Below, piece after piece: positions 37,204-62,608 of a stretch of 64,000 nt of DNA. The notes below the pieces were generated by a model, which saw only the letters and a program-made list of their open reading frames with translations, did not search any database and had not been told where the DNA came from. Location of the stretch: positions 62,001-126,000 of the IMG/VR virus record IMGVR_UViG_3300044625_001067; one strand, written 5' to 3'. Each line of letters opens with the position of its first letter. Position 1 is the first letter of the stretch. The position numbers and the translations under genes were made by a program.

Positions 37204-38124
37204 CTAGTCGAGTTCAACGACAAGAACGCCGTCTTCTCTTTTTGTAACTTTGCGAACGGTTTGTTCGGTGTTTCGAGGTAAGATAGCCTCATTTTCATAA
37301 GGTACATCAGAATACATGTTTACCGGAGTTAAACTTCTATTCTTTGAGACAAACAAGACACTTCTAGACGTTCTGGAAGCACCAAGGAAACCATTTGCAG
37401 TCTTTTCGTCTAAGGAATAGGACCCGAAACCGGGGTCTTTTAGAACGGACCCAGGGGTCAGTTTTTCCACTTGGGCGTACAAGTCAGCGGATTTTAACGG
37501 GAAATTAACCCCACGATAGAATGAGATACCTTCATTGTTTTTCGGGAGCTTACCTAGAGCTGAATCAAATTCTTTTACAAACTCCTTAGTGATCTCAGGT
37601 TTTTTGCAAGTGGGAGGGTTTCTTAAACAGGCGTTAGTCTTTTTGTGCGGGCGGTCAGACATGTCTGAGGGGGCTGTGTAGTCATAAACGGATTTAGCCT
37701 CCGCGCTACTTAGCTTAACCTTTCTTTGTGCTTCGTTTATCCTTGTAAGGACTTCTTCATGTGTGTCTTTCTTTGACACCTTTTGTTGGTTGTCCTGTGC
37801 TAGCTTATCTGTAAGCTTTTCGAGAGAGGAGTTCAGTTCAATGGGTATCTTTTTACTTGGCTTAACCTTCGCCCCGGTACTCTTTGTTTTTCTCGGCGTC
37901 TTAGTGGCTTTCGCACGCTTAGGCTTTTTAGTTGCCACCTCTTTCGCTTGCTTTGTACCTTTCCTGCACTTTCCAGAAGTCCCGTACGCAGTACCGTCCT
38001 CTCGAACACAACGAGTGTAGTCGTACGGCTCTAAGCCTAGCTCAGAGAAGTTACAGGACGATAGTGCTCCAACCATCTCTTCGCACTTCCTTAGCGATTG
38101 CTCTGAAAAAGACCCTTGGCTCAT
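37204..38124 (-). CDS. Tag-fused ADP-ribosyltransferase (R-S-E clade, VIP2/Alt-like)
   Basis: N-terminal RCVREDGTAYGTSGKCRKG tag; C-terminal FYRG, GFGSYS, ENEAILPR. Confidence 0.85.
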   Translation of the reverse strand: MSQGSFSEQSLRKCEEMVGALSSCNFSELGLEPYDYTRCVREDGTAYGTSGKCRKGTKQAKEVATKKPKRAKATKTPRKTKSTGAKVKPSKKIPIELNSSLEKLTDKLAQDNQQKVSKKDTHEEVLTRINEAQRKVKLSSAEAKSVYDYTAPSDMSDRPHKKTNACLRNPPTCKKPEITKEFVKEFDSALGKLPKNNEGISFYRGVNFPLKSADLYAQVEKLTPGSVLKDPGFGSYSLDEKTANGFLGASRTSRSVLFVSKNRSLTPVNMYSDVPYENEAILPRNTEQTVRKVTKREDGVLVVELD

Positions 38125-38195
38125 AACTGCGACTACTCTTATAAACAAACTTACCCCTAATGCACCCACGACGGGGGTGAGTTTTCAATGAGGAC

Positions 38196-38351
38196 TCACA
38201 GAGTCGATTTGTATCGGTTCAACCCTTTCAGAAAGGTTTTCATGTCTGGGGCCTGCGCAGCATCCTGTCGAAATTGCTCGCGGGAATCAGCTGCAATATT
38301 CTGAATGAGTGCCGCGAGAGTGCGACTGGTTGTGGGGTCGTTAAGGTTCAT
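38196..38351 (-). CDS. 51-aa helical protein coupled to the upstream ART-like gene (not in ORF track)
   Basis: MNLNDPTTSRTLAALIQNIAADSREQFRQDAAQAPDMKTFLKGLNRYKSTL; ATG 1 nt after the upstream stop. Confidence 0.65.
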   Translation of the reverse strand: MNLNDPTTSRTLAALIQNIAADSREQFRQDAAQAPDMKTFLKGLNRYKSTL

Positions 38352-38352
38352 T

Positions 38353-39552
38353 TTAGTCCGGTGTTAATTCAGGGTCGTTCGCTACGATGATTGCTCCACG
38401 GTTGAGAACAACCCAGAAGTCTTGGCCATCGGTCTGTGGAACTCTATACGCATGTATTCCCAGAGATGCAGCGGCTGACCCCACATCGTGATGGTCGTAC
38501 CCCGTAATCTCTCTTGCTTTCTGCAGGGTCTCTCCTTCCCACTGCCTAAACTGCTTCCCGTCTCCCTCAAACTGTACGAGTCGAGCGTCGGACCGGAATG
38601 CAAACGCTGAAACCCTTAGTGTTTTATTTCCACTTTCCCCAGAGTAGTCTTTCGCTGTATCTTGGGCCCATCTATCATGCTTAACCTTGCCAGATAAAGG
38701 GGAAGAAGCAGAGTAACTCCCACTCCCGTAAATCCCGCCACCAGGAAAGTGCTTGTCTCCGTCTGGACCACCACCTTTGAACTGCAAGGAAAACTCATTT
38801 GAACCTACGCCGCGATAAGCCACAATTGGCCTTCCGTCGGGGTTCCGGGCTATATCTTTTCTTGATTCCAGTTCCGATCGTGTTGCAACAACCTCCGGTC
38901 GAGCATGAAAACCTTGCCGTTCGTACACAGAAGTGAGAATCGGCGGTAACAAGGTGCCCTTGCGAGCACTCGAAAGTGTTCGACCGAGCTCCATACCTTC
39001 CTTTTGCAGATGTAAAAGCTTCTCTCTTGACACGTCGTCGGTAGGCTCTCCTATTGCTCGGACTCTTTTCTTCAGTGCTTCAAGTTCCTTTTCGAGAAGC
39101 TCAACCTCTTTCTCAACCGTGGCTTTCAGTAAAGGTTTGCTCGATCCAGGTGTTTGCGTGTACTTCGGCGAGTTTCTCACCAATTCGTCGTATTGATCCT
39201 GAAGGGCACCCTTTTGTTGTGTTTGCTCTGCCTTCTTCGCCAAGTGAGTCTTTAGGCGAAGATACCGTAAGGCGGTAAGGGCACTCTCTGTGAGGGGTGT
39301 GCGGTACCCTGGCTTTGACAAAAGCATTCCCTCAAGAGTCCTTAGATTCTTGTTTAGAGCGTCAGGATCATTCTTTTCGTAAATCTTGACATTTTTGAGA
39401 ACAGACTCTCTTCGAGTGCTACGGTCTTCTTTTGCGGACTCCACTCCCTTGCGACATTGTCCTGCTGTACCGTACACCCCACCGTCCGGTTTCACACAAC
39501 GTGTAAAGTCGTGCACAAACGCTAGGGTATCGGGGGAAATTTCTCCGTACAT
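38353..39552 (-). CDS. Tag-fused protein with C-terminal ART-like fold
   Basis: N-terminal RCVKPDGGVYGTAGQCRKG tag, coiled coil, then AYRG...GGGIYGSGSY...AKDY...WVVLNR. Confidence 0.65.
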   Translation of the reverse strand: MYGEISPDTLAFVHDFTRCVKPDGGVYGTAGQCRKGVESAKEDRSTRRESVLKNVKIYEKNDPDALNKNLRTLEGMLLSKPGYRTPLTESALTALRYLRLKTHLAKKAEQTQQKGALQDQYDELVRNSPKYTQTPGSSKPLLKATVEKEVELLEKELEALKKRVRAIGEPTDDVSREKLLHLQKEGMELGRTLSSARKGTLLPPILTSVYERQGFHARPEVVATRSELESRKDIARNPDGRPIVAYRGVGSNEFSLQFKGGGPDGDKHFPGGGIYGSGSYSASSPLSGKVKHDRWAQDTAKDYSGESGNKTLRVSAFAFRSDARLVQFEGDGKQFRQWEGETLQKAREITGYDHHDVGSAAASLGIHAYRVPQTDGQDFWVVLNRGAIIVANDPELTPD

Positions 39553-39582
39553 TCGTACAACCGAACTAAGCACCAGGGTACT

Positions 39583-39990
39583 TTACCCCTCCGCGTGGTT
39601 CACCAAGCGGCCTTCCCGCATTAGTGAGAAAAAATGTGAAGCTACCGTTTGCCCCTTGATGTCCACCGGCGTAGCCCTGAGGGGAACCCACAGAGGGAAC
39701 TCAGAGAGCACATAGCGGTGGTCTTCGTCGACCAGGCACGCTAGGGCACTGGGGTCAAACCCCTTGTAGTCTGGATCGTGAAATTCTACCACCGAGAGTC
39801 CGTAACTCCGAAGAACACACGAGAGTTGCAAAAGCTCCCATTTGCTCTCAACCGACAGCCACACAAAGGGTGGGTGTTCCTTGGCTAAAGACTCAGGGTG
39901 CAACCTCGCAAACTCGACTTGTGCGTGAGCCGCCTGAATAGCTTGCTGAGCAGGGTCAAGGTCGCGGCGTGTGATCGCGTAGAAATGCAT
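39583..39990 (-). CDS. Peptidyl-tRNA hydrolase 2-like protein
   Basis: YAITRRDL...QAIQAAHA, F.DPD...ALA, L..FPL. Confidence 0.65.
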   Translation of the reverse strand: MHFYAITRRDLDPAQQAIQAAHAQVEFARLHPESLAKEHPPFVWLSVESKWELLQLSCVLRSYGLSVVEFHDPDYKGFDPSALACLVDEDHRYVLSEFPLWVPLRATPVDIKGQTVASHFFSLMREGRLVNHAEG

Positions 39991-40018
39991 TTGCGGTTTC
40001 GAGAGCTTAAGTAAGGGT

Positions 40019-40062
40019 ATTATACGTTATTTCAGAGTAGAAACAAGGGGGGAAACCGTCCC
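40019..40062 (-). promoter_or_regulatory. Repeated early promoter element
   Basis: TTGTTT-16-TATAAT, GGGACGGTTTCCC box. Confidence 0.7.
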
Positions 40063-40887
40063 AAACGAAAGGTCGTACAAAGTGCTCGCTATGAGCAAAA
40101 GTCTTTCGCTGTCGTGCAACCCCGAAACCCATCGCTTAGGAATAGCCTTGTAACCGTAGTAAGCACCTGCTAGCTGCCCCGTAATCGCAGCAACCGTGTC
40201 TGAGTCGTCCCCGTAGTTCACAGCCTGCAGGATGGCCTCTTCAAAGGACGAAGTTGACCCAAAGTGGTAGAGTGCGGCGTTTAAGGACTTCGGTGCGTAC
40301 CCGGAATTTTCAATTCCCTCCGGCGAGACTTCAGGTTTTCCCCCCGTGCCATTTAAGTATTGGTGCAGCAAACGACCGAGATCTTTGCATAGGTCGGATG
40401 CCAAGTGGCCATGGGTTGTTGATGATGACGCGTCACACGCTGCTACAGCGTCCTGCTCACTTGACTTGTGGTACACAATAGAAACGGGGGATAAACGCAT
40501 CAAAGACCCGTTTCCTTTCGAATTCTCCGGATAGAGACTCAAAGACCCCTCAACGAGAAAAGTCTCAATTGCACGAAGTGTTCCATTGCCGATGTCAAAA
40601 CAGACACCTGTTGAGCTGTTCCTTCCGTACTCGTACCAGTTGGAGTACCGACGCATTTGGTCTCCAAGATTGATCTGCCCATTGCAATGAATAAAAGACT
40701 CGGCAAGGCAAACAGCCTGCGATGTGTCGTCCGTCCAGTAGCCTGACGGCAGATTAAAGGGCCCCCCTGCTCGGTAACCTGTGACGGTCTCAAAGGTCCC
40801 CGGTGGAGAGAACTCCACTGGCGCACCCATCGCGTCACCGATCGCAAGGCCAATAAAGGCTCCGAGGCATTTGTCGAAAGTTGTCAT
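40027..40887 (-). CDS. ADP-ribosylglycohydrolase (DraG/ARH family)
   Basis: GLAIGDAMG, WTDDT, GNGSLMR, TTH, GDDSDTVAAITGQLAGA. Confidence 0.93.
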   Translation of the reverse strand: MTTFDKCLGAFIGLAIGDAMGAPVEFSPPGTFETVTGYRAGGPFNLPSGYWTDDTSQAVCLAESFIHCNGQINLGDQMRRYSNWYEYGRNSSTGVCFDIGNGTLRAIETFLVEGSLSLYPENSKGNGSLMRLSPVSIVYHKSSEQDAVAACDASSSTTHGHLASDLCKDLGRLLHQYLNGTGGKPEVSPEGIENSGYAPKSLNAALYHFGSTSSFEEAILQAVNYGDDSDTVAAITGQLAGAYYGYKAIPKRWVSGLHDSERLLLIASTLYDLSFGTVSPLVSTLK

Positions 40888-40977
40888 TTTTCCTTGTATG
40901 GTTCTTGTTTGAGCGGGCTTGCTTGGGTGGATATAAGACCCAAGGTAAGGGTTAGAGTCTCGCACCATGGGCAAGGG

Positions 40978-41673
40978 CTATGCACGGGGGAACTTTCCTC
41001 GAAAAGATATCTTAGCGTCAAACCCCTTCTGCACGAGTCGATCCTTGTCCGATACACTCACAGGCGGAACACTGTCTGGGCTATCCCTCAGCGAGGCCAT
41101 AAACATTGATATATTTTGGTACATTTGCTCAGCCGGAATTGCTGAGGCGAATCCCAACTTCCCAAGGATTGGGATCTCGCGACTTACGGCCACTTGAGGC
41201 GACTTTTTGAGTCCGCTGAACCTCGGAGTGGGCTCTATCACGAATACGGGAACCTGAAGTTGTCTTGAGATATCGACACAACTTTTGTTCGGAACTCCCC
41301 ATATTTCGTCCATCCTAATTTCTTCGAACCATCTTCGGTGGCTGCTGTGTACCATGCGCAGAGAGGGGTGGTCTTCTGTAATTAGTCTCCAATCAGGAGT
41401 AAAACTTATCTTTGAGACAAGAAGGTACAGCTCTCCGCAAACTGAGCACCACTTAAACGCCCACGGAAGGATCTCCCCGTAGTAGTCTCTTCTGGTGGGT
41501 ACTTCTGGTATGCGTTCGGTTTCGTTGACGTTTACGTACACATTCGAAGAGTCCGGTTGGTCAGGCTGTGACAGCTCTTTGCGAACGTAAGTGTTCGAGG
41601 GGTCACCACCTTCTTGAGAGTACAAATACTCCACATAGTCGTAGTAGTCCTTGAATTTTGATTGGATCTTCAT
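40978..41673 (-). CDS. Conserved phage hypothetical protein
   Basis: MKIQSKFKDYYD start and KGFDAKISFR end. Confidence 0.75.
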   Translation of the reverse strand: MKIQSKFKDYYDYVEYLYSQEGGDPSNTYVRKELSQPDQPDSSNVYVNVNETERIPEVPTRRDYYGEILPWAFKWCSVCGELYLLVSKISFTPDWRLITEDHPSLRMVHSSHRRWFEEIRMDEIWGVPNKSCVDISRQLQVPVFVIEPTPRFSGLKKSPQVAVSREIPILGKLGFASAIPAEQMYQNISMFMASLRDSPDSVPPVSVSDKDRLVQKGFDAKISFRGKFPRA

Positions 41674-41727
41674 TTTCCTACTGATTTAGGCCCCTGCCTG
41701 GTTCTGATGGGTTAACGTGTCGGAGTC

Positions 41728-42328
41728 TTAGTGGGATGCTAGTATGGCAAACGCATCAAGATTGTCGTAAGTTTGAGAACGTCCCCAGTGGTTTATGGCG
41801 TCCTTGTCCCACCAATCTGAAGGCAACACATCGGAACCAATTCTAGGACCAAACTCAGTTACTAACCAACTTTCTCTGTCGTAGTCCCAAACTGAGTTCG
41901 AAAGCTCTATTTGTTCGGCTATATACCTTCTTCCGTCTGGCCCCTCAGCAACAACAACTTCATACTCGGTCCAACCTCCGTGAAACTCCTCTCGCCGCTT
42001 CTTCAGCGTTTTCCACTTTCTGCCTTAGGTCAAGGACGATGCAGGCAAAGTTCTTAAATACTTTCTCTTGAGACTCGGACAAGTTCGTCCAGTTAATTCC
42101 CGCGTCGCTCGTCGGATTCGGGGTGACCTCTTCGGTGTTCAAACCAGACAAGATCTCCCGCATGACCTGGTGTGTGTCCCACTCCACCTTAAACCGGTAG
42201 AAGTCTTCTGAACTTTTGAAATCTGCCCAGTTAAATACACCGTAGTTTCGTATTTCTACGGGGTCCAACATTAGTTTCTTGGCCTTTTTCTTTCCTGAAG
42301 GACTAAGGGCCTTTAGTTCAAGGTTCAC
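41728..42328 (-). pseudogene. Hypothetical protein, probably frameshifted
   Basis: ORF 41960..42328 overlaps a ~100-codon open +1 frame with no early start codon (WKTLKKRREEFHGGWTEYEVV...ILASH) ending at 41728. Confidence 0.5.
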
Positions 42329-42384
42329 AGTGTTTCAGCGTGGGTTGGAGTGTAGGGTGCTGTTTTGGCTAGGAAAGTTGGCGG

Positions 42385-42715
42385 TGTAAGGGGGCCGAAA
42401 CCCCCGAGTTATGAGTCAGAGTGCGGTTGCTCAAACGGCAACGGCAATCCTCTCGAATTTGACGATGTTGTTAGCGTCTATTTTGTGCTTATGCAAGCGG
42501 CTTTCACTCAGGCGACATCTTTACCCTAGCGAGACCATGGCACCCCCTTGACTAGAGGTGGGAGTTTAACCCACAGTGACCCTGCCTTCTCAGTAAGTCG
42601 GAAGGTTGAAGAAGGGACGGTCACGTTCTCAAATGGAGGTGAGGGGATTCGAACCCCTGTATAGGGCACTATCTTCCAGAGCTACACCCAGTTTAATGTC
42701 GTGTGGTAGGACTGT
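42385..42715 (-). ncRNA. ssrA: Permuted two-piece tmRNA (outer ends approximate)
   Basis: T-arm AGGGGTTCGAATCCCCT plus CACCTCCA (ends 42634) precedes the 5' strand GGGGGTG (starts 42547), giving G3.U70; tag ORF 42431-42475 ANNIVKFERIAVAV*. Confidence 0.9.
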
Positions 42716-44358
42716 CCGCCTAATAAACTTCTATGCTTAGCCCACTCGTTTCAGGGGTGGGTGTTGACCAGGAGCCTATCCCTATGCAAGCTCCGGACGG
42801 TAAAATGAGTTGCAGGTATTCTCCGCCATGTGAACCCTGGCAGCCTTTAACCTCCGAGTAAGAGTAGCTCAGAATGTCTCTATTTTCTACCAACTTTTCA
42901 AGGTCCCCTTCAATCATGAGCGGCAAGCCCCGTAAGTATCGGTTTCACGTCGTATTTTCGTACTAAAAGCGCCAAAAGCTCTTTCTTCAGCCCCTCAAAC
43001 CCACCTACAATTTGGTCCTGGGGAACAGCGTAGCAGGGTCCAACCTTCGTACCCGCCCAAGGGATAACCTGCTTCGTTTCGAGTATCTCTTTTCGGTACT
43101 TCATAAGCAGGTCATCAACTTCGATCATCAGAGTGAGCTGGGGGTCGGGTTGGCTGGATTGCCTCATTTTAACAGTGTAGTTAGTGCTAAGTGAAAGTAA
43201 ACCGGAGCATGCCGTCAAAACTCCTTCAGTAGAGCCGATGTGGAGAAATCTTGGCCAGCTTGAGAGTTTATCAGCACACACTCTGCTTGCACAGAAGGGT
43301 GCCAGAATCCTTTTATCTCAGAAAACGGGACGTAGTTTTCCCTGGCCCAGCTACGAAAAGAGTCCTCTTCTTCAGCTGTGAGACTACGATAGAGTTCCAT
43401 GGACTTTGAGGGAGTTACCGGAGAGTGTTTTTAGTGTAGTCAAAACCGGGACTTCTGGCGAAAGACCCTGCTTCGGGAGACCCTGAATAGAGCAGAGAGG
43501 GATAGTGCCAAAATTATCAGGATCCAGAGGCCATCCACAACTGTGCTACTCAGGGCTATGGGGTCTCCCAAGGTCTGCGAGGGGACTTCAGTCTGAGTCT
43601 GGTGACGCTTTTCCATTTGATGAGAAGGGCGGAGTAAGCAGTGTGGGGTTGAATGGAATGAGAACCTCGGACCAGAAGGAGTCACCGTTGGGGCACTTGT
43701 AGAGAAACTCCCAAGTTTGTGTCCCAACACTTTGTGCTCCAGCGATTAACTTGCAGCTTTCCTCTGTGACTTTCTGAGCGTCCTTTGACCAGAAAGGTCT
43801 CCACCCCTCCGGGTGGTATGCGAAAGCAGGTTGTGCCGAAGAAAACGAGCATAGGGCGCAGAGGGTTAAACTCAGTATAAACTTCATGGGGCAGGATTAA
43901 AGGACAAGATCCCAGTTCGGGTCTCCCGAAAGGTCGACCCACACGCAGTACCCACTCTTGGAAGAGACAAGTACTTTGTTGCCAGTGCGTTTTTCCAGCC
44001 GAACGGCGCTGTCACCGCCCATAGACTTTTCCAGGGCTGCCCTGGCTTTGTTTGACCGGGGGACTAAGCGCATTCCTCCATCTCAGGGTGGTACAGCGGA
44101 GTGGTAAGACTCCCCCAGTTATCGCCCAGGAAGGCCAGGAACCCTGGGACAAGAGTGTCGTTGTAGAAGGGGTCTAGGTCCTCTGGGACTCGGCTATAAG
44201 CCGTGGGGCTCAGCTTCATGAGCTGGTTAACAAGGTGCTGACCCCACCGAATACCCTGGGTCTGAGGCTGGTTAGAAGCCCATTCGACAAATTCCTGAAA
44301 GTCCATTGGATCTCCTGAGTTGAGGGCTAAGTGTCTGAGCACCGCTGCTCATGTAAAT

Positions 44359-44423
44359 ACTATACCGTTTCTGCCGAGCAGAAGCAAGCCGGGAAACCGC
44401 CCCGGAGCAAGCGGTTAACCGCC
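44359..44423 (-). promoter_or_regulatory. Repeated early promoter element (two boxes)
   Basis: GGCGGTTAACCG and GGGGCGGTTTCCC, TTGCTT-17-TATAGT. Confidence 0.85.
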
Positions 44424-44450
44424 TCTGGTTTAGCCAAGAAATTGCAGGAG

Positions 44451-44918: not shown

Positions 44919-44959
44919 GGGAGTAGTATGCATTCGCACAGAAAATGTTACCCTTGCGC

Positions 44960-46102
44960 TCACCGGTTCTCAATACAACCGAGACTTTGAAATTTTTCCA
45001 CAGTCTCAGCACAGAGAGTGTTGATGAGTTGGTCATCTACCGTGTTCGGCAAGACGCACTCGTTCTTCCCCACGTGCTCAGCCTCCTTAAAGAGCTGAGT
45101 TACAATTGTGCTTAGTTCGTCATACGTAATCCTGCCGTACTTAATGTCCAGAAGAAAATCTGCGTCCCCAACCAACTTTCTATTCACAAGAAGCTCTCCG
45201 GTTCGCATTCCCTCAATGGCCATTTTCATAAGTCGAACACAGTGGCTGGCGTTCTTCCCGTCGTACCCACAGGCCCGCTCAATTTCGGATCGCTTCACAT
45301 TCCGATTAGTCAACCAATCTTGGTAATTACTCCACCGTTTTAAATCTGACCGGTACTGTTGGCTTGAGTGGAGAAGGGCCATGTACTCATCGCTTGCTCT
45401 CGTGATTTTCTGTGTTTCATTGAAGCACTCCTCCGGTAAGACACTCTGCTTCAAAATTCCTTTCCAATCAACACGGTCGTTGAGAAGCTCGTACAGCTCG
45501 ACTGAAGGTTGGTAGTACTCGATTCTGTCTTTAATCAGCAAGTACAAGTACTCGATGAAAGACTCGATTTGAGACGGGGTTAAGCTCGGGGAAGAGACAC
45601 CGTAGTCCTCCCACTCCGGTCGCCGTGTTGGAGGGTTTAAGAGCCATTTGCGGTGAGTCTCCATTTTCTTGATCTGGGACCTTGCGTACTGAACGAATGT
45701 GCCAGAGATTCTCCTGGAAATTAGCTTCCTCCGGTTGTCAATTAGCGACTGCCCCAGAAAGTCAAGGTACAGGTAGCTGTCGGGAGTCTGCCAGAGCATC
45801 TCCAAAATGTTGGGGTTTTGCGACCGCAACAAGCTCAGGTACCTGCGAATGCCGTACACCACTGAATCCGAGTTATCTAACTCAGGGAATCTAGAGTTGA
45901 ACTCACCCTCGTCTTGTTGCTCCCCTACCCACCCCTTATCCTTTTGCTCAAATGTTTCGAGAGTGGTGTAAAACCGCTGTGGCGCCACACAGATTCCCTT
46001 AAAGTCCAAGTCGGACATCTCGGTGTTGAGGCCATAGGCGTGGCTGCCTGACTTGCAAAACAGGATCATCCCGTCTTCAATTTCTTTTCGTGTAATTGTC
46101 AT
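44960..46102 (-). CDS. Pol-beta-superfamily nucleotidyltransferase (RlaP/YcgL-like)
   Basis: GSHAYGLNTEMSDLDFKG, NPNILEML, GYDGKNASHCVRL. Confidence 0.88.
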   Translation of the reverse strand: MTITRKEIEDGMILFCKSGSHAYGLNTEMSDLDFKGICVAPQRFYTTLETFEQKDKGWVGEQQDEGEFNSRFPELDNSDSVVYGIRRYLSLLRSQNPNILEMLWQTPDSYLYLDFLGQSLIDNRRKLISRRISGTFVQYARSQIKKMETHRKWLLNPPTRRPEWEDYGVSSPSLTPSQIESFIEYLYLLIKDRIEYYQPSVELYELLNDRVDWKGILKQSVLPEECFNETQKITRASDEYMALLHSSQQYRSDLKRWSNYQDWLTNRNVKRSEIERACGYDGKNASHCVRLMKMAIEGMRTGELLVNRKLVGDADFLLDIKYGRITYDELSTIVTQLFKEAEHVGKNECVLPNTVDDQLINTLCAETVEKFQSLGCIENR

Positions 46103-46438
46103 TTTTCCAGTTACTGGTTTGTCTACGTGTGTTACTAGCGGTTTTCAATCCCAGTCCCTTACGTCAACAATCTCGTACCAGTCGTACTCCCGGTCTGGGT
46201 CTTTGCTGCACTTAATTCGGTAGGTTATGTTGTTGCTTTTTAGTTGGCCTTTCATGGGGCCAGACTTGAAGAATCGTGGACAATCAACGTACTCGATTTG
46301 CTCTCTAGCCTCGCTCACAGTTTCAAAACGAGCTATCCAATCTTCTGACCCTTGTGAAGGGTAGTAATGATCGCCGGCAATCAAGAGGAAAGGCTTGTCC
46401 ATGCTTAAGCTCAGGTTGTTTTCGGAGTATGATAACTA

Positions 46439-52676: not shown

Positions 52677-52721
52677 GCGTAGCTCTTGTGGTGTGATGGG
52701 GGAATACTAGTTCTTTTGATA

Positions 52722-52786: not shown

Positions 52787-52807
52787 CCCTTTAGAGTGTA
52801 ACAACTA

Positions 52808-54484
52808 CTAACCAAGCTTGTGCACTGTGGAATTTCCTATCGCAACTCCCAAGAGAAAAGAATCCTCGCATGCTTCTCGAACGTGAACGCCAACATAAAC
52901 ACGTCCTATGGCATTTTCCAAGCCAGCTTCAAAGAAGCTGTTATCTTTCCACAGGCTAGAGCTTGTCACGGAGCTTATATCACCTAGACTCCCGTTTGCA
53001 ATGCGACCGTCAAAAGATCGAGACTTTCCGGGCAGGTCCTGCGAAGTTGTTGACCATATGAGGTTGTCGCCGAAAAAGTGTGTCATTACACTCGCAAACA
53101 CTCCGCCCATCACTGAGTGACCGGATATAAAGTCAGGGAACGGTGGAGATTGTACTCCGTTTATGGAGGAAAGCAACGACTTCCACTCTGTGTCTCGGAC
53201 AGTGAGGTCTGAGCCGTCTTCATCGGAAAAACTGCCAGTGATTACGTCCCACGGTCGAGGCTGAACATTGTCGTATTTTTCTCTCCATGCCACGGTTACG
53301 GCGTCTGCCATGGCGACGCTTAAGCTAGCGAATAACCTAGCGTTGTTAGCTGGGGTTGTTGCTTGGTTCGTTGCTATTTCAGTTGCAATATCAAACAACT
53401 GACCATACGGCCTATAGGTGTCAGGCCGATCGTAAGCCCAAAAAAGAGCAATGTCCGTCTGATCAGCATTTCGGCGCGAGGTGGTGGTTGCAGTGTTTGT
53501 TAGTCCGCCGTACAAACGCACTTCAGCTAAGTCTCTGGCGTACAGGTCCAAATTCACGTCTGGCTTGCCCTGTAGACCGTTGGTCCTATGTGTAACTTCA
53601 CTGCCTAAACCCCACGGTTTTACTGTGCCCCAATTGGGGCCTAGAGCAGCCCCTGCAGTGGGTCCGCTTGAGGCTGGCATCCAGGTATATCCCGGCAAGC
53701 TATTAGTAGGGGGTTGATAAGGTGTATTATTCGTTGATCCGTCGTTGGATCTTAGTGAGCGGATTTGATCAGCTATTCCGGACCCCAGGGCTAAGCCAGA
53801 GTGAATGCTCTGCGAGGTTCCCGTCAGATTGGCCAGACTTGATTTGTAGTGCTTTTGGAGTATTTCTTGTTCTCCAGGAAGCTCCAACGAAAGAATGCGG
53901 TAGGCCGCACCAATCAACGCGGCATCTACGCTAGCAGCAGCGGGTGCGTTTTGGTCGATCTTGTAGAAGGCCACTTGATCACCGAACGCTGCCCGAGTGT
54001 CCAACATTGCCGTGGAAAGCATTGCCATCAGACGACTACCTGTGGTAGGAGGCACTCCAGGTTTTCCATTGCTGCCCGCTGATTGGATTGCTTCCAGAGC
54101 ACAGCTAATCCAGGACAGAACTTGGTCGGGACCAGGCTGATTGACCGGTGGCGTGATGTTAGCGGCCTTTTGGTTGCGAAAGAAGATGGCCTTTTCATTG
54201 GTGCTGAGAGAGCGAATGTCGCCGTAACCGATCTTGTCGAATCTGTTGACGCTGGTATAAGTGACAGCGACGGTGTCTGTGGCGAGGACCGCTGAGGCAA
54301 GATTTAAGCGAACGGTTTTTCCACCGTCAATTAGCGTTGCGGGTCCAATGACAGTGCGGCGAACCCCGTTCACTGTTACTTGAAAGCGGCTGAAGCTAGG
54401 GAGAGTACTGCTTAGGACATCGCTGTAGCGCAGCTCGACGAACGACTCTTTTGCAATTAGCTCAACCAGGGTCAATGATTTCAT
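52808..54484 (-). CDS. Vanadium-dependent haloperoxidase / PAP2-superfamily protein with N-terminal SwmB-like domain
   Basis: KYDNVQPRP, PFPDFISGHS, RVYVGVH vanadate/phosphate-binding motifs; N-terminal FQVTVNG...VRLNLA...DTVAVTY. Confidence 0.85.
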   Translation of the reverse strand: MKSLTLVELIAKESFVELRYSDVLSSTLPSFSRFQVTVNGVRRTVIGPATLIDGGKTVRLNLASAVLATDTVAVTYTSVNRFDKIGYGDIRSLSTNEKAIFFRNQKAANITPPVNQPGPDQVLSWISCALEAIQSAGSNGKPGVPPTTGSRLMAMLSTAMLDTRAAFGDQVAFYKIDQNAPAAASVDAALIGAAYRILSLELPGEQEILQKHYKSSLANLTGTSQSIHSGLALGSGIADQIRSLRSNDGSTNNTPYQPPTNSLPGYTWMPASSGPTAGAALGPNWGTVKPWGLGSEVTHRTNGLQGKPDVNLDLYARDLAEVRLYGGLTNTATTTSRRNADQTDIALFWAYDRPDTYRPYGQLFDIATEIATNQATTPANNARLFASLSVAMADAVTVAWREKYDNVQPRPWDVITGSFSDEDGSDLTVRDTEWKSLLSSINGVQSPPFPDFISGHSVMGGVFASVMTHFFGDNLIWSTTSQDLPGKSRSFDGRIANGSLGDISSVTSSSLWKDNSFFEAGLENAIGRVYVGVHVREACEDSFLLGVAIGNSTVHKLG

Positions 54485-54629
54485 AGACTAGAACTGAGTT
54501 TAGAAAACGGATGAAGAATTTCCTGTGGTACGACCAGAGAACATTCGTTTTAAAGGGGTTTAGCACCCCCTTAGTCTTGGTAGCACTCGGTTAAAGTAAA
54601 CCCGTAACCCCTGGGTCATTTTGCGCTAG

Positions 54630-56416: not shown

Positions 56417-56566
56417 TGGTGGTATGCGCATTGCGACCAGTAGCCAGGTTGAGAGCCGGATCGAGCCGGGACCCAAACAACTCGTGGCAGGAACACCGGA
56501 GTGTCTGCCCCCGAATGAGGATAACAAAATGGCTTCTTGTCTAAAACAGGGATGTATGCTATCATT

Positions 56567-57019
56567 TTATTGGGGAAAAAGGTCTAAGGCCACCGCAATT
56601 TCCCAACATAAGAGCATAGTTTGGAAAGCAGTTACAAGGGTCCAGACTGTATTTTGTGCAGACATTCGAAACGGGGTAGAGCGAGTGTGGGGGGTTTGAC
56701 TCATGGCGCATTCATGCTCTTGTCTCTCTTCTCCAGGGTAGGGGTAGCAGGTCTCCAGCCGTGCACAGGTTGCTGTAGCTTGTGCAACAACGTCTGACCA
56801 GGAGATCCCATTGGCCTCTGTAATTGACATCAAGACAAGCAGAACATCTGCGGCTTCCGACTTCGGGTCACCACGCTTCCCACGAAGCGCCTCAATTAGT
56901 TCTGATGACTCAAGGTGTAGGTATGCACCACGAGCCGACCAGTGCAGTGACCAACCACGCCTCTTGCACATTGCTAGTATACGTGGTGCTAAGCTCTGAT
57001 CATCAGTTTCCTTACTCAT
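56567..57019 (-). CDS. MazG-like NTP pyrophosphohydrolase
   Basis: LESSELIEA...SEAADVLLVL (ExxE...ExxD). Confidence 0.7.
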   Translation of the reverse strand: MSKETDDQSLAPRILAMCKRRGWSLHWSARGAYLHLESSELIEALRGKRGDPKSEAADVLLVLMSITEANGISWSDVVAQATATCARLETCYPYPGEERQEHECAMSQTPHTRSTPFRMSAQNTVWTLVTAFQTMLLCWEIAVALDLFPQ

Positions 57020-57268
57020 TTCACACCAAGTTCGGTTTAGGGGGTCAGCTCTTTCACTGTGCTTACTTATCAAGTAAGTAGTAGAATTCGGAGTCGGGTT
57101 CAGGTGGAAAATAACCACCACAAAGTGTGGCCATTGAGTCTAGTGCCTCTCGAACAATCTCAGCTTCTTTGCCATACAAACAATCACGTTCCAGAAAGTT
57201 CAACCTACTGTAGATTGTTTCAAAGGCTTCGAGGGGGGTCATTGGACTTGAGGGTTTGCACTGAAGTA

Positions 57269-57332
57269 AGTATACCGTTTCTGCAGAGCAGAAACAAGGG
57301 TGTAAACCGCCCTGGTGCAGCCGGTTATCCGG
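57269..57332 (-). promoter_or_regulatory. Repeated early promoter element
   Basis: TTGTTT-17-TATACT, hairpin GTTTCTGC-3-GCAGAAAC. Confidence 0.8.
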
Positions 57333-57784
57333 CACGGTGAAACGTGGGCATCAATCCTGAACATTTAGCTCTGTACGAACCCACTGAAGAAGAAGTAAGC
57401 ATGCGCCGCTGTGGTCTCCCGCACCTTCTGCAAAGGTCACCGCGTTCCTTAGCACATCTTGTACGTTCCTTACACACCAGTCGTTTTGCTCTAGTAGGGT
57501 TGCAGAGCGGTCTAAAAAGTCTGCTGCCTCAACAGTTCCACCATTTTCAGTATCTCTCTCGTCTTTTGCGTTGTCCCTCAGCCATTGTACAAGCTCAACC
57601 ACTTCCCCTTCTCTCTGGGGTTTTACTCGGAGTGCGGTGGCGGCGATAGCCGAGACTGACTGAAGTGCCTGGAGCTGACCGGCACGGTAGGGTCCGGTGC
57701 TACCCATTATGGGGCGAAAAGACTGGATCCGTTCTAGTGCCTCTGTCGGAGTTATCATGGCAGTGAGTTTCTGGGGTCTATCTA

Positions 57785-57829
57785 ATTTTACCGTTTCTGC
57801 GCCGCAGAAACAAGCCGGGAAACCGCCCC
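57785..57829 (-). promoter_or_regulatory. Repeated early promoter element
   Basis: TTGTTT-17-TAAAAT, hairpin GTTTCTGC-3-GCAGAAAC. Confidence 0.8.
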
Positions 57830-58704
57830 AGAGCAAGACGGCTGCACTACCGCTGTGCTACGTGGGTGAGTTCTCTCCGGCCCTACCTTAGCATCTTTCT
57901 CGATCGAGTCGAAACTCGGCCTGAATTTGCTTGTAGACGCTTCGCTTCCACTCGGGCTCTCTCACTACGGGAATTTGATACGGGATCTCACTCAGCAAGC
58001 GCACCTCAACGGTGTTATCTTTCACGTTTGACGCCATGACAGTATCCCTCAGGTGTTGTTTTTTGGACAAGCTTTGCTCAGCGCACGAATCGCCGAGAGT
58101 GCGCTTCGAACTTCGGATGGTGTTCGGCACCACTCTAAAGCGTTGGATACCTGTCTACGGTTTGAGCACATTTCTTGCGCCCAAAATCGGAACAGTTCCG
58201 CGTCTTCCCCGTCTTTTTCAGTTCCCATGAAGACTCCCGACGTTTTCACAAACTTTCCGAATTTCCCCTTGAGTGATCTTGGTTACACCGAAGTCACACA
58301 TGTTCGGGGGACTACCCGCAGCGTGAAGGGCGATTAACTCAGCTTCCAACGTCGGAGTGTGTCGAGATCGAGTGCGCAAGTACCACACGTCTTGAGCGCA
58401 ACTCACAGAAACTCCGAGTTCGGCTGCAAGGTCTCTCATGTACTGCTCCAGCTCATCGTAGTACTCTTGTTGTTCATTCATGAGAGTTTGCTGAGATGGA
58501 TGTAGGGGTTAAACATTTCCATGGAAGTTCATCTTCGTAGTTCCCCATTAGTAGTCTCACCCAGAGTTTTCCGTGAGAGTCGAGAGCAACTACATGTTCG
58601 GTTACAACAGTAGTTATTTTACTGTCGTCCGGGGTGGTGTAAACTGAAACGCTCTGAGGGACTACCTTAAAGGAGACAATTTTCTCAGGGAAGTTGTTCA
58701 TGGG

Positions 58705-59097
58705 TCAGGGAAAGGGTACAAACTCGCAAACGAGGGGAAAACTAAAGTTCTCTCTTTGAATTGAAAGTGGAGACTGAAGCATCACATTCGACTCAACCGG
58801 TCGTACACCGGGAAGCATCGAAATTGTCATGTGAGGGTTCTTGTTCAAGCAAACACTCCGGATTCCGTTCGGAAGCTCAACTCGCAGGGCATGAATGCGG
58901 TCGCCAAAGCAGTTCTCAGTGGCACGAACCGTGAAAGTTCTCCCTAAGATCCCGTCTGGAATCTCGTTCTCCACCACACCAAACTGCAAAGTAACGTGAA
59001 AGTGCTAAGCAGCTTGGTTGAAGATTGGGTGAACTGGGGATTTTTGCTCCGGGAGGGACAACCAGAGAATCCCACGGCGAGGGGCGGTGTTTTCCAT
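58705..59097 (-). pseudogene. 2H phosphoesterase-like protein interrupted by in-frame TAG
   Basis: HVTL and HMTI (two HxT motifs); ATG 59097, TAG at 59005-59007 three codons before the first HxT. Confidence 0.75.
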
Positions 59098-59103
59098 ACT
59101 TTA

Positions 59104-59165
59104 ACTATACCGCTTTTGCTCTGTGAGGGAAAGCGGGGAAACCGTCCGAGTTAGGGCGGTTATCC
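59104..59165 (-). promoter_or_regulatory. Repeated early promoter element
   Basis: TTTCCC-17-TATAGT, ATG 6 nt after the -10. Confidence 0.7.
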
Positions 59166-59331
59166 TCGTTTAAGTTGAAGAAAACAGTGCCACTCCAATG
59201 GCACCTCCGCCTAACATTGATGACAAGAGGCCCAGTGGGGTGGTATAGCGAGCCCAGCGACGAAGAAAAAGAGTCCGATGAGTAGGAGGGGTTTGTCCAT
59301 AGCGGGTACAATCGGTGGGGACAAGGGTAAA

Positions 59332-59405
59332 CGCCCTGTGCAGGATTTGAACCTGCGACATTCTCTTTAGGAAAGAGATGTTCTAATCCACTGAACTAAC
59401 AGGGC
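59332..59405 (-). tRNA. tRNA-Arg(CCT)
   Basis: Cloverleaf; anticodon arm TCTCT-TTCCTAA-AGAGA; T loop GTTCAAATC; no encoded CCA. Confidence 0.92.
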
Positions 59406-59477
59406 TTTTGGCTTAAGTCCGTATGCTTCTTGCAAAGGGCAAACCGGACTCAGTACGATGGTAACCTTATGGGGTTA

Positions 59478-59551
59478 CGCCCCCTAGAGGATTCGAACCT
59501 CTGACACCACGGGCCGAAACCGTGTGCTCTAATCCGCTGAGCTAAGGGGGC
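59478..59551 (-). tRNA. tRNA-Arg(TCG)
   Basis: Cloverleaf; anticodon arm CACGG-TTTCGGC-CCGTG; GTTCGAATC. Confidence 0.92.
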
Positions 59552-59837
59552 TTGGCTGCATAATGTGCCGGGGGTGACTACCCCATTTGACGTGCAAATC
59601 TTCCGGCGGAACTCACCTTTACCCCTGGGTGGGAATAGACGGGGAAGTGAATTTGCCCATCCAAGAAAACTAACCTGTAGTGGTTCTTAACAAGGAAGTT
59701 TTCGAAGTTTGTAGCGTTCAGAGTCTCAATTCGCCTTAGCGTCTCAAGGGTTTTGCAATGATTTTGTAGCAGAGTAACTTGCCTCTGCAACGCCACGTTT
59801 TTGTTGTGCAATTCCACGTTTTGTTTTCTCATGTGCG

Positions 59838-60371
59838 TCACCACCGACTTGTAGTTGGTTTGGGTGCAAGTCCCAGGATTTCAAGATCGTCCTTGCTTAA
59901 GGAAGCCAAAAGTTCGGCTTTCCGCTCCCGAACTCGTTTCTCCTCGTCCTTTGCTCGTTGAACCTCGCTCAGGAACTCATTTGCGTCCCAGAGGTCGGAA
60001 TTAAGGGAATTCAGCTCTTGTTGTGACTGAGGACCCTGCCGAGAGAATTTCACACCACATTCACCCATTGGGCGTGAAGTGTCAAGTGTAAGGGCGAATC
60101 GATCCGGTGTTACAGCCTCACCGAACTCACTGTAGGTGATTCGTTCAAGGATGGGCTCCACCCCAAGCTCTCTGGCTTTAGCCATAAGGCTCAGGATGGT
60201 CCACGGCAACTCTGCTGTCGCCGCAGCCAAATTCGCCTCAAGATCCTTTTGCTGCTGCGCAGCTTTCTCAGCCTTTAGTTGAGCTTTTCGTTCTGCTCGG
60301 TCTTTACTAGCTGCCCACTGGGCAACTGTTTGAGTGGTTTCTTCGTCAGAAATTTGGATGGGGTTGGTCAT
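59838..60371 (-). CDS. Hypothetical protein
   Basis: ORF behind promoter 60397; ends with A.LS..DL..LGL. Confidence 0.7.
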   Translation of the reverse strand: MTNPIQISDEETTQTVAQWAASKDRAERKAQLKAEKAAQQQKDLEANLAAATAELPWTILSLMAKARELGVEPILERITYSEFGEAVTPDRFALTLDTSRPMGECGVKFSRQGPQSQQELNSLNSDLWDANEFLSEVQRAKDEEKRVRERKAELLASLSKDDLEILGLAPKPTTSRW

Positions 60372-60396
60372 TGGTTCGACTGGCTCGACTGAATTA

Positions 60397-60461
60397 ATCA
60401 TACCGTTTCTGCAGAGCGAAAACAAGCGGGGAAACCGTCCCAGATGAAACGGTTTACCGCC
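60397..60461 (-). promoter_or_regulatory. Repeated early promoter element (two boxes)
   Basis: TTGTTT-17-TATGAT. Confidence 0.8.
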
Positions 60462-60845
60462 CTCTCACCCCCGAAGCTACTCAGGAAGCAACCGCAACGG
60501 TAGGAACTAAGGAAGTGTCCCGACCCGCTTGAGCCTTCATTGCAGAGCGAGCACGAAGCATCGCCTGAGCCTGCAGAGCTGCGTCGTTGACGGTTAGCTG
60601 CAGGGCGGAATGGCGACTGGTGTAGGAGCCGTATGAGCGCCCGTACTTGCGGTTCCACTCATCTTGGCGTTCTTGCGGCCAGACGTAAGAGAACACAGGA
60701 AGCTCTTCAATGCTTCTTTGAGACTCTTTAATTTCCATTTTACGAGTGCGCTGACGCTCGCTGAGCTGAGCGTAGGTAGCTTGCCATTCGGCAACTTCAC
60801 GCAGGTATGTGTCGCGGTCTTGCATTGTTTTGTAAGGTTGGTTAA

Positions 60846-60918
60846 CACCGGCAGAGGGATTTGAACCCCCGACATCAAGCTTAGAAGGCTCGCGTTCTGT
60901 CCGCTGAACTATGCCGGT
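60846..60918 (-). tRNA. tRNA-Arg(TCT)
   Basis: Cloverleaf; anticodon arm CGAGC-CTTCTAA-GCTTG. Confidence 0.9.
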
Positions 60919-61275
60919 TTGCTCGAGGTGGGTTACACGGTGTCCCCCACCTGATTGGTTCTAACTTAGCGCATTATGCACCGGGGTACTCTTCAAGGTA
61001 GCCCTTGTACCAGTCCTGGGCAGCCCCTGAAATAACCCCTCAACCATATTCTTTAGGATCCAGAGCTGGCGTTCAGGAAACGCTGTCATTTTCAGATGAG
61101 TGTATCTGAGTGAGCCCCAGCTCCTCAGGAACTTGGGGTTTTGCTCTGGGAACAAAGTCAGGAGCAAGGAGTCCACCAGGGGGCGTTTCTCGAACCCGCG
61201 AGTCATGCTCGAAAGAGTTTCTTCGATGGCGGTGAGCTGGGTGGGGCTGAGGCTGAGGTTGTTTTCCATGAACTA

Positions 61276-61342
61276 ACTATACCGCTTTTGCCCCGTAGAA
61301 ACAAGGGGGTAAACCGCCCTCGAATAGGAGGGTAAACCGCCC
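61276..61342 (-). promoter_or_regulatory. Repeated early promoter element (two boxes)
   Basis: Two GGGCGGTTTACC boxes, TTGTTT-17-TATAGT, ATG 6 nt after the -10. Confidence 0.8.
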
Positions 61343-61810
61343 TAGTTCAGTCGTTGCCAGTGGGGAGAGTGGTAGGGGACCTCGGAGAGCCGGGTGCCTC
61401 TTAGGTGAAAGCAGAGCCAAAGAGAACCGCCATCATCCACTGCAAGAATGTACGGGTCGTACCCTAAGTGTGAATTACCGGGAACAAGCTCGTAACTAAC
61501 GATACTATCTGGTGCTAGGGGACGTGGGATAGTATGGATTTCTGGAGTATGAGGGTTGTCAAAGTCCATAGTGACCTGGGGCAGGTGTACGGCGCAGTAT
61601 AGCCTATTCAAGGGTCCGTAAAGCCCTTGCTAGACGTCGTCGAGTGCGAGATATCTGTCTTTTTATGTAGGGTAGAGACCGCAGGTGGCTCTTCCACCTA
61701 CGCTTTCCTCGCTGCCATAGTAGGATTGACTCCTGTTTTGACTCAGGTTTTGCCATGCTTCTTTAGGGTGTCAGGATGCTGGTAGGTTTTGTAGGCGTGC
61801 AAGCCTATTC

Positions 61811-62608
61811 TCAGCCAAGGTGATCCTTTGGGGTTCCCCTTGAGGGAAGTTCCCCGAATAGAACAACGTACCAGTCTCTCAAACTTCCAGGGTTCTCGGA
61901 GAAGGAATGCGGTGGTTCAACGCCACCACCTTTGCGAACCTGGCCGACCAGTTGTCCATCCCCCTTGTCTACAAAGCCTATGCGCTCGTATGCTTTCTTG
62001 CGTTTGTCTCCTCTGCCGTCCTCGTCGTAGGCGTAACAATGAATGACATCACCGGGGCTAAGAGACTGCGTGAGGAGCCCAAACATACGTCTTACGGTGA
62101 GTGCCGCTTTGACTTTGTCGCGAGGGTCTTCTATACTACCGTAGTCGTACTCGCCATTTACAAGAAAATCAACTTCCTTCGTGTTCCCCTTGAACTTTAG
62201 GGAAACTTCGTCAAAGTCGTTCAGTCTTCTCTTTAAGGATACAAAAGTCTGGTTCGACACGACAACTGTGGACCCATCGTCTAAGTTTCGTATGTTGTTG
62301 GCCTTGTCACGATTTAGGTTAAACCTCTTGATAGCAATATCTCGTCTTTCGGGCTCATCAACTAGCTTTTCATTAATCTGTTTGGTCCACCAGCGATCTT
62401 CGTACTCTTGTTCCTGTTTCTCCTCGTCGGACCTCTTCACCGCCCTGCGCAGGATTTCCTTCGCCTGCTCTACACCTTTACGGCACTTTCCCGATGTCCC
62501 GTACGCAGTACCGTCCTTCCTAACGCAACGTGCGAAGTCGAGCGTGTAACCCTCAGGCAAAAGTTGCGAGAGTTTTTGAAAACTTTCGTGAGAAAAAGAA
62601 CTTTGCAC
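61811..62608 (-). CDS. Tag-fused protein with possible GNAT-like C-terminus
   Basis: N-terminal RCVRKDGTAYGTSGKCRKG tag; C-terminal R.KAYERIGF. Confidence 0.7.
   Translation of the reverse strand: MQSSFSHESFQKLSQLLPEGYTLDFARCVRKDGTAYGTSGKCRKGVEQAKEILRRAVKRSDEEKQEQEYEDRWWTKQINEKLVDEPERRDIAIKRFNLNRDKANNIRNLDDGSTVVVSNQTFVSLKRRLNDFDEVSLKFKGNTKEVDFLVNGEYDYGSIEDPRDKVKAALTVRRMFGLLTQSLSPGDVIHCYAYDEDGRGDKRKKAYERIGFVDKGDGQLVGQVRKGGGVEPPHSFSENPGSLRDWYVVLFGELPSRGTPKDHLG

Follow-up and report, generated by a model that had tools for sequence, protein, structure and literature searches.

We analyzed a 64 kb stretch of DNA (hereafter, the window) from IMGVR_UViG_3300044625_001067, a 277,244-bp phage genome from a lake metagenome. 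The source phage is a freshwater cyanophage and belongs with the S-CBWM1-like cyanomyoviruses that have Mu-type portals. Nearly all genes of the window lie on the minus strand, and its GC content is about 0.50. Open reading frame (ORF) calls and translations place three genes, which we named A, B and C, on this strand; their products begin with nearly the same two-cysteine module, here called the tag, and continue into unrelated payloads. These genes, their parts and the motifs upstream of them are as follows, with the evidence in parentheses (HMM, hidden Markov model; ART, ADP-ribosyltransferase; AF2, AlphaFold2).

37204..38124, minus strand: gene A, tag, K-rich linker and ADP-ribosyltransferase, 306 aa, P0001 (ORF, Pfam, alignment A8)
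37939..38124, minus strand: gene A tag, residues 1-62 (tag HMM domain E 2e-28; alignments A1, A2)
37237..37734, minus strand: gene A ART catalytic domain, residues 131-296 (Pfam ADPrib_exo_Tox, 1.1e-13)
38150..38156, minus strand: GGGTAAG promoter-like motif, 32 nt upstream of the gene A ATG (motif scan)
37035..38194, minus strand: gene A cassette of promoter motif, gene and downstream spacer (missing in related strains)
38353..39552, minus strand: gene B, short tag, helical linker and toxin-like payload, 399 aa, P0002 (ORF; tag HMM E 5e-19)
39427..39552, minus strand: gene B tag, residues 1-42, with a shortened N-terminal helix (alignments, tag HMM)
38356..38955, minus strand: gene B payload domain, residues 200-399 (family alignment A6, hhalign, PHROG)
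39582..39588, minus strand: GGGTAAA motif, 36 nt upstream of the gene B ATG, overlapping the stop of the upstream ORF (motif scan)
38196..38351, minus strand: 51-aa ORF directly after gene B, immunity- or antitoxin-like partner (tblastn loci, alignment A7)
61811..62608, minus strand: gene C, tag, acidic/basic helices and GNAT-like domain, 265 aa, GTG start, P0003 (ORF; tag HMM E 9e-24)
62456..62608, minus strand: gene C tag, residues 1-51 (alignments, tag HMM)
61931..62278, minus strand: gene C GNAT-like fold, residues about 111-226 (structure comparison of the AF2 model)
62631..62637, minus strand: GGGTAAA motif, 29 nt upstream of the gene C GTG (motif scan)

A six-frame regular-expression search of the 64 kb found the two-cysteine block exactly three times. 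Genes A, B and C are the window's only matches to the tag HMM (E 1e-19 to 1e-28), and the whole 277-kb genome holds 5-6 copies of the tag. An initial annotation of this DNA, made from the letters alone, had quoted the three blocks and the short leaders before them, and all of these proved exact. It had described a block of ~29 aa near the N-terminus; the block is real, but an alignment of 12 N-termini shows that it is part of a module of about 57 aa that begins at the initiator Met. The module reads M-x-G-x-F-S, an amphipathic helix, [DN]-F-S-E, and then Y-D-F-T-R-C-V-R-P-[DN]-G-x-A-Y-G-T-x-G-x-C-R-K-G, and both Cys and three Gly are invariant in the family. It ends with C-R-K-G-[TVS]-E (E in 85%), followed by x-[AG]-K-[EK]-E and a K/A/P-rich linker, so that the charged linker described in the initial annotation holds family-wide. 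AlphaFold modeled the tag as a helix with three short strands.

At the DNA level, the three tags share 62-80% identity, and 8-11 of 18-23 identical residues are encoded by differing codons. Because identical residues often use different codons, the tag is conserved at the protein level; these synonymous differences rule out a recent duplication or gene conversion behind the shared block. The parts after the tag are unrelated among A, B and C, as had been claimed, with only A finding a Pfam family (ADPrib_exo_Tox, 1e-13). No family in the Pfam or PHROG scans covers the tag, the PHROG matches being confined to the payload regions, and its profile gave only chance matches among PDB sequences, to designed beta-trefoils (E>=0.04), which fits the earlier failure to recognize it as a named domain. 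Compared by megablast with 50,697 phage records, the region found no match.

We searched 1.84 billion cluster representatives with the tag profile and obtained 873 matches at E<=1e-3, 413 of them at <=1e-10. In nearly all of the 150 best matches, the tag starts at residue 1-5. The payloads of these 150 representatives include eight ARTs, about five kinases, three DUF6496 proteins and one nucleotidyltransferase, and in more than 125 of them the payload lacks a Pfam family. The payloads tend to be small proteins (median 247 aa). A word-based search with residues 1-50 of gene B likewise retrieved relatives with the same N-terminus and other C-termini, including kinases of ~520 aa. On the relatives' metagenomic contigs (200-262 kb, with psbA, MazG, two sigma-like factors and ribonucleotide reductase, RNR), 4-5 tagged genes lie within 20 kb. 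Among 185,579 bacterial and archaeal species genomes (one each), the tag occurs only on two 3-4 kb contigs of metagenome-assembled genomes; the family is phage-restricted. The HMM search and the table of C-termini proposed in the initial annotation thus found the tag in front of unrelated payloads rather than one shared C-terminus, and the layout of one constant N-terminus with variable payloads extends from three genes to 873 representatives, with ART, kinase, NMNAT and GNAT-like payloads and more than 100 of unknown type. The tag defines a large, so far undescribed family.

Single-linkage clustering of the C-termini was uninformative, as shared short linker modules merged 107 proteins into one component. 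Two modules recur after the tag in otherwise differing proteins, A-I-K-Q-L-G-G-M-L-P-K-G-E-K-I..G-G-L-H-T-A-A-G-K and G-M-R-L-T-x-K-V-K-A-L-x-x-E-E-L-K-K-V-L-N-D-P-R-L-N-D-K-Q-R (P0006, P0038, P0046, P0051, P0060; P0009-P0015, P0029, P0044). We also came across irregular tagged genes: a 758-aa ORF in which two neighbors are merged and the second tag has become internal (L004, 17473..19749), a 38-aa remnant of a tag after a tagged gene (L001, 7576..7689), and a P0007-like tagged gene of the window's own genome truncated at 106 aa (L132, 2995..3315). Such fused, remnant and truncated genes are signs of cassette turnover.

The payload of gene A matches ADPrib_exo_Tox with 51.5 bits, against a curated cut-off of 23.4. 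In A8, the alignment of gene A with its tagged relatives, R90, S121, E163 and E165 are invariant, and the motifs FYRG, GS[YF]S and E-x-E-A are conserved. By these sequence criteria, gene A encodes an intact, Alt-like ART of the R-S-ExE type, as initially annotated. Metatranscriptome contigs from two runs join position 37034 to 38195 with 31 other letters in between and no gene A, and at three related loci (L165, L166, L168), also without gene A, a small ORF directly adjoins the region downstream of A. Gene A with its own promoter motif is therefore a presence/absence cassette among strains. No conserved ORF was found downstream of genes A and C.

The AF2 model of gene B (predicted local distance difference test, pLDDT, 84.6) has a well-folded C-terminal domain. 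The family alignment of this payload (A6) shows invariant R, H, G-x-G-x-Y-G-x-G-S-Y, R-x-D, H-A, D and L-N-R-x-A, and an invariant S-P-K-Y-x-x-T-P-G-S-x-K-P precedes it. In hhalign, the payload matched residues ~1176-1377, in the C-terminal part, of gp030 from phage P-SS2 with a probability of 99.9% (E 1e-31), and in PHROG it matched phrog_16619 'minor head protein' (2e-11). P-SS2 gp030 is a protein of 1,499 aa with Phage_Mu_F and Zeta_toxin domains whose gene adjoins that for the portal. In the purified-virion proteome of P-SS2, ORF030 had a peptide count of 96.5, the highest among the table rows examined (PMC2784084). On this sequence evidence, the B payload is a homologue of a domain in a virion-detected MuF protein, and it occurs in three contexts: behind the tag, behind a second leader described below, and inside the MuF protein.

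None of 17 family members of the B payload has a Pfam match; there was no PDB sequence match, and a profile search with the payload alone came back empty. Compared with the ART family of gene A, hhalign gave a probability of 23% and aligned only YRGV and G-S-Y-S. The B family has no invariant Glu or E-x-E, an invariant Asp occupying the E-x-E position. A language-model neighbor cluster of gene B is partly ART-PolyVal, and Foldseek gave only a weak tankyrase match; with the whole model, in Foldseek (PDB, AFDB clusters) and VIA-align, a long helical hairpin dominated and left the payload uninformative. That gene B encodes a divergent ART is therefore only a hypothesis. For the ART-like fold proposed in the initial annotation, support is weak: hhalign pairs the R and S motifs with those of family A, but the E-x-E and a Pfam match are missing.

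A conserved ORF of ~50 aa lies 2-14 nt downstream of the aligned B-type payload (tblastn coordinates) in all 17 loci with a match to this ORF, on at least 13 different contigs. The alignment of this partner family (A7) shows 13 invariant residues, and the 51-aa partner in the window has no Pfam match. Its placement is the arrangement of a toxin with its immunity protein, so by analogy the ORF may be regarded as immunity-like. We also considered the small virion proteins encoded after P-SS2 gp030 as possible relatives; they are not homologous to it.

For gene C, the AF2 model reached a pLDDT of 85 overall and about 95 in the payload. GNAT acetyltransferases made up most of the 50 best PDB matches in VIA-align, with about 100 residues aligned at a modest Z of 5.2-6.7, and the Atlas structure matches were also GNAT. 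Gene C has no Pfam match, and Foldseek returned nothing significant (E>=0.1). Of the acetyl-CoA pyrophosphate loop (Q/R-x-x-G-x-G/A), a partial D-G-R-G-D-K was read by eye from the sequence. The GNAT-like assignment made at first with reserve agrees with these fold matches, at their modest Z.

Each of the three genes has a GGGTAA[AG] motif ahead of its start codon, at a distance of 32 nt for A, 36 nt for B and 29 nt for C. The 64 kb contain 12 coding-strand copies; the other nine are not at such spacing before annotated ORFs, although this was not an ORF-by-ORF check. By our own estimate, the chance of the motif falling within a 16-nt interval before three given genes is about 1e-8. Among unique tagged ORFs in IMG/VR, 53 of 107 carry GGGTAA[AG], its position peaking sharply at -29 to -32; GGGTATAA is present before many of the rest.

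Synechococcus phage S-CBWM1 (Aokuangvirus), the sole isolate with the tag in the phage collection, allowed the motif to be placed among annotated genes. GGGTAAA occurs 43 times on the coding strand of its genome versus 6 times on the other strand. It lies 30-39 nt before the portal, protease, tape measure, tail fibre and baseplate-region genes, several neck/head ORFs and the endolysin gene, and at greater distance upstream of the sheath and major capsid genes. At such spacing, none was found before the DNA polymerase, primase, topoisomerase and sigma-factor genes, and one copy lies 68 nt before RNR beta. In the window's own genome, GGGTAA[AG] precedes the sheath, portal and protease genes and a gp177-like gene. 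Because the motif precedes virion and lysis genes, we read GGGTAA[AG] as a putative promoter element of this late class; the timing would follow from the kind of gene that it precedes.

A second promoter-like sequence, sigma-70-like, is repeated on the minus strand of the window as GGGCGGTTTCCC..CTTGTTTCT..TATAGT. Its upstream element has 13 hits at 11 sites, none before a tagged gene, and the promoter scan bears out the earlier remark that the repeated early promoter is not directly upstream of A, B or C.

61341/61318, 57827, 44401, 34103, 28031, 21052, 16325, 13185, 11743, 7870 and 5476, minus strand: repeated promoter unit (motif scan)

In this unit, GGGCGGTTTCCC is followed by CTTG(T/C)(T/C)T, then by an inverted repeat and finally by TATAGT/TATACT; small ORFs begin about 15-25 nt further on. 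One copy of a GGGCGGTTTCCC-type upstream element stands before a virion structural gene in S-CBWM1 (132293). Metatranscriptome contigs covering 36700-42600 show that the genes there are present in RNA libraries; these contigs carry no transcript starts and hence provide no promoter test.

S-CBWM1 has two tagged ORFs, gp165, located just upstream of the tail sheath gene, and NMNAT. According to two papers that cite Xu et al. 2018, the NMNAT was detected in the virion proteome (PMC10665884, PMC9602691), and three kinases (APH, ChoK, Rio2) were likewise found in the virion according to the former (PMC10665884). We found that the APH, ChoK and RIO kinases bear a second leader, M-x-x-K-x-C-x-[KR]-G-K-S-C-G-x-x-C-[IV]-x6-7-C, with four Cys. 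The annotated starts of RIO and ChoK appear too late and remove this leader; in-frame ATGs lie at 117830 and 70398. A fourth S-CBWM1 ORF with the second leader is gp106. The PknB-like kinase, which has no such leader, is not among the virion kinases reported in PMC10665884.

S-CBWM1 NC_048106, 66779, 70398, 117830 and 118742 (loci L009, L010), and loci L095, L105, L109, L113 and L136: second leader (sequence)

The four non-structural enzymes named as virion-associated are all among the six leader-bearing ORFs of about 177 coding sequences (hypergeometric probability about 4e-7 by our own calculation), the list of four being that of the citing papers rather than of the primary proteome table. 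On several homologues of the B payload, the second leader takes the place of the tag; it is absent from the window. As far as we found, this second cyanophage leader is also undescribed.

The head/tail module of the source phage is related to that of S-CBWM1 and includes the sheath, a Mu-type portal, a head maturation protease, whose gene adjoins the portal (phrog_976), and a lambda-E-type capsid protein, among others. In the same genome, the major capsid homologue is split (L044, 17227..17469 and 18990..19679) by about 1.5 kb holding a 216-aa ORF (17920..18570). By analogy with S-CBWM1 psbA, the insertion may represent an intron or intein that encodes a homing endonuclease.

Taken together, we propose that the tag is a late-expressed virion-loading address for the proteins fused to it, which would be delivered into the next host, and we give this reading a probability of roughly 65%. 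Tagged genes would be transcribed late, from the promoter class of virion and lysis genes. The tag would then steer the fused payload into the assembling particle, as capsid or ejection cargo, and the payload would enter the next host with the DNA and act there before any phage gene expression. Proteins delivered in this way would include many small basic ones besides kinases, NMNAT, a GNAT-like enzyme, an Alt-like ART and the toxin-like domain that MuF proteins also have. For a toxic payload, as presumed for gene B, the small cognate protein encoded directly downstream would probably neutralize it in the producing cell. In this scheme, the tag itself would cause loading, the A, B and C proteins of the window would be packaged, and the tag may be cleaved after the conserved G-[TVS]-E / A-K-E; its cysteines might bind metal or form a disulfide, as the initial annotation suggested. 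We favor virion loading because the rival explanations account for fewer observations, especially as regards the promoter class, the proteome reports and the strict placement of the tag at the N-terminus. A capsid-loading or ejection address had already been proposed in the initial annotation; it now has support that is indirect yet convergent, from the virion-gene motif, the B payload in the P-SS2 MuF protein and the tagged NMNAT in a virion proteome. More tentatively, and at slightly less than even odds, the tag and the second leader may together serve as a portable code for virion cargo, in general use across a large clade of aquatic myoviruses.

Several observations weigh against virion loading. 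About half of the tagged ORFs lack a strict GGGTAA[AG], and in S-CBWM1, GGGTAAA also precedes genes whose products are not of the virion, namely lectin, PhoH, a homing endonuclease and tRNAs. The other tagged S-CBWM1 protein, gp165, is not called structural in the GenBank record. NMNAT-like proteins have been reported in virions of T4-like cyanophages, and in a tblastn search of the phage collection at E<=0.01, the gene C protein including its tag had no match outside S-CBWM1; the tag is thus not required for NMNAT packaging. CsCl-purified virions may, moreover, carry abundant late proteins as contaminants, as the authors of PMC9602691 point out. The tag fold was modeled with only moderate confidence (pLDDT 54-76). 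A complex prediction of the S-CBWM1 tag with the portal and the protease/scaffold scored 0.00 and is neutral on binding.

The tag might instead be an intracellular docking or assembly domain that gathers enzymes at one hub, such as DNA, RNA polymerase, the ribosome or the phage factory. A small, basic beta-hairpin module with conserved Arg and Lys, followed by K/A/P-rich linkers resembling nucleic-acid binders, would suit this role, and payloads such as ART, kinase and GNAT-like enzymes match the T4 and T7 modifiers of RNA polymerase or the translation machinery. A docking domain would not have to be at the N-terminus, but the tag occupies that place in nearly all of the top 150 matches. Early promoters would be the natural choice for enzymes that take over the cell in which they are made, whereas the tagged genes bear the virion-gene motif within a region of early promoters. 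A tagged NMNAT reported in virions also fits docking poorly, and we consider such a role unlikely.

The strict N-terminal location and the conserved G-[TVS]-E / A-K-E boundary would suit a zymogen-type propeptide or regulatory N-terminus (an autoinhibitor, degron or chaperone handle) that silences toxic payloads until late lysis or processing, and toxicity is implied by the immunity-like partner of at least one payload. Most payloads, however, are small and do not look enzymatic (the median length and missing Pfam families given above), so that silencing would be needless, and both the virion-proteome reports and the B payload shared with a MuF head protein would be left unexplained; such a function seems improbable. 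Least probable of all, and in our view hardly credible, is that the proteins are exotoxins freed at lysis, with the two-cysteine module as a disulfide-bonded device for receptor binding and entry into competing cyanobacteria. The polymorphic-toxin layout and the immunity-like gene after B recall such toxins, the two invariant Cys could form a disulfide in oxidizing water, and MuF toxins have been discussed in similar terms (PMC5576092). Against this, the genomes look lytic, with no integrase in the regions read, and immunity would then be useless after lysis; NMNAT and kinases make poor exotoxins; and 57 aa is small for both receptor binding and translocation. Virion loading therefore remains our preferred reading of the tag.

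Elsewhere, the window has the gene content usual for the accessory part of a large phage genome, with NAMPT-like and PRPP-synthetase-like genes, an ADP-ribosylglycohydrolase, two RNA ligases, an RlaP nucleotidyltransferase and lysozyme/RlpA genes. The following features were recorded (DPBB, double-psi beta-barrel).

40027..40974, minus strand: ADP-ribosylglycohydrolase gene, two genes upstream of B and A (Pfam ADP_ribosyl_GH, 3.5e-61)
30868..33320, minus strand: NAMPT-like (504 aa) and PRPP-synthetase-like (313 aa) genes, adjoining with a 4-nt overlap
42340..42723, minus strand: permuted (two-piece type) tmRNA gene, tag peptide ANNIVKFERIAVAV
59332..59405, 59478..59551, 60846..60918 and 62660..62733, minus strand: three tRNA-Arg and one tRNA-Met
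134..1612, 9689..10768, 23670..24902 and 44960..46102, minus strand: RNA-repair set of phrog_850 'RNA-binding protein' (492 aa), two RNA ligases and an RlaP-type nucleotidyltransferase
35531..36160 and 36040..36678, minus strand: RlpA-like DPBB lytic transglycosylase and lysozyme-like ORFs, overlapping by 121 nt in different frames
52808..54484, minus strand: 558-aa protein with SWM repeat, PAP2 and weak vanadium-chloroperoxidase N-terminal matches, unusual for a phage

The ADP-ribosylglycohydrolase could possibly act as an antidote or regulator for ADP-ribosylation, and its membership in the system is uncertain. We rejected it as a regular partner of tagged ARTs, its linkage to the B/A cluster being confined to the close relatives L165, L166 and L168. 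A 135-aa ORF of no known family directly upstream of B (39583..39990, minus strand) shows wider linkage to B-type genes than the ADP-ribosylglycohydrolase does (L092, L093, L121). The NAMPT-like and PRPP-synthetase-like pair resembles the phage NAD+ reconstitution pathway NARP1 (Adps and Namat). Together with the ADP-ribosylglycohydrolase, the ARTs and the tagged NMNAT of S-CBWM1, this pair suggests an NAD+-centered arsenal. The tRNA-Met gene ends about 50 nt upstream of gene C, and in the RlpA-like and lysozyme-like overlap, one start is probably later than listed.

Which proteins a phage injects is difficult to tell from sequence, except in T4, P22, N4 and a few giant phages. If the tag is a virion-loading address, it would be one recognizable from sequence; hundreds of cyanophage proteins now labeled 'hypothetical' would become candidates for injected effectors, and the recurrence of kinases and NMNAT in cyanophage virion proteomes would be explained. 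NAD+-related warfare (ART, ADP-ribosylglycohydrolase, NAD+ salvage, NMNAT) would be tied to the first moments of infection in picocyanobacteria, hosts of ecological importance. If the two-leader code holds, more than 800 protein clusters with these leaders, mostly of unknown function, would form a catalog of proteins that enter along with the DNA, as first-minute host-takeover and anti-defense effectors, including NAD+-centered ones. The tag might also be used for loading arbitrary cargo into cyanophage particles. As S-CBWM1 and its Synechococcus host are in culture, the idea is directly testable.

Among known systems, the capsid targeting sequence (CTS) of T4 is about 10 residues long and is removed by gp21. 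It is a constant N-terminal address on diverse late, encapsidated and injected proteins, the internal proteins IPI-III and Alt (PMC3012670). The tag resembles it as a constant N-terminal module on diverse proteins, one of them in each case being an ADP-ribosyltransferase. It differs in that the T4 CTS binds the scaffolding core, whereas the tag is ~57 aa long, combines a helix with a two-cysteine beta-hairpin and has no sequence similarity to the CTS; the head module is also different, being of the S-CBWM1 type with a Mu-type portal and a lambda-E-type capsid protein. A PHROG scan of genes A, B and C gave no match to T4-type internal proteins.

In encapsulins, a short terminal peptide suffices to load unrelated enzymes into an HK97-fold shell. 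These peptides differ from the tag in being about 10 residues long, mostly C-terminal and part of cellular nanocompartments, and we found no sequence or genomic relation to them. Like the tag, the second leader of S-CBWM1 sits at the extreme N-terminus; the two are interchangeable on B-type payloads and share a C-[RK]-K-G core. The second leader differs in having four Cys in a zinc-knuckle-like arrangement and in lacking the M-x-G-x-F-S helix and the YDFTRCV hairpin.

The polymorphic toxin systems (Zhang et al. 2012, PMC3482391) likewise join one conserved N-terminal module to swappable C-terminal domains; among our genes, a predicted immunity-like downstream ORF is present at gene B only, with none conserved after A and C. 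MuF/polyvalent head proteins, of which P-SS2 gp030 is an example (PMC5576092, PMC5512222, PMC9503650), also combine a virion-associated N-terminal carrier with variable toxin or enzyme domains and have immunity genes nearby. Unlike P-SS2 gp030, which has a Phage_Mu_F domain, A, B and C show none (PF04233; Pfam, E<=1). The carrier here is a 57-aa tag rather than a structural domain of ~300 aa, and the effectors are separate, individually promoted ('monovalent') genes rather than parts of one giant multidomain protein. The principle of virion-loaded effectors is already known; what is new here is a module of ~57 aa that is carried by separate genes.

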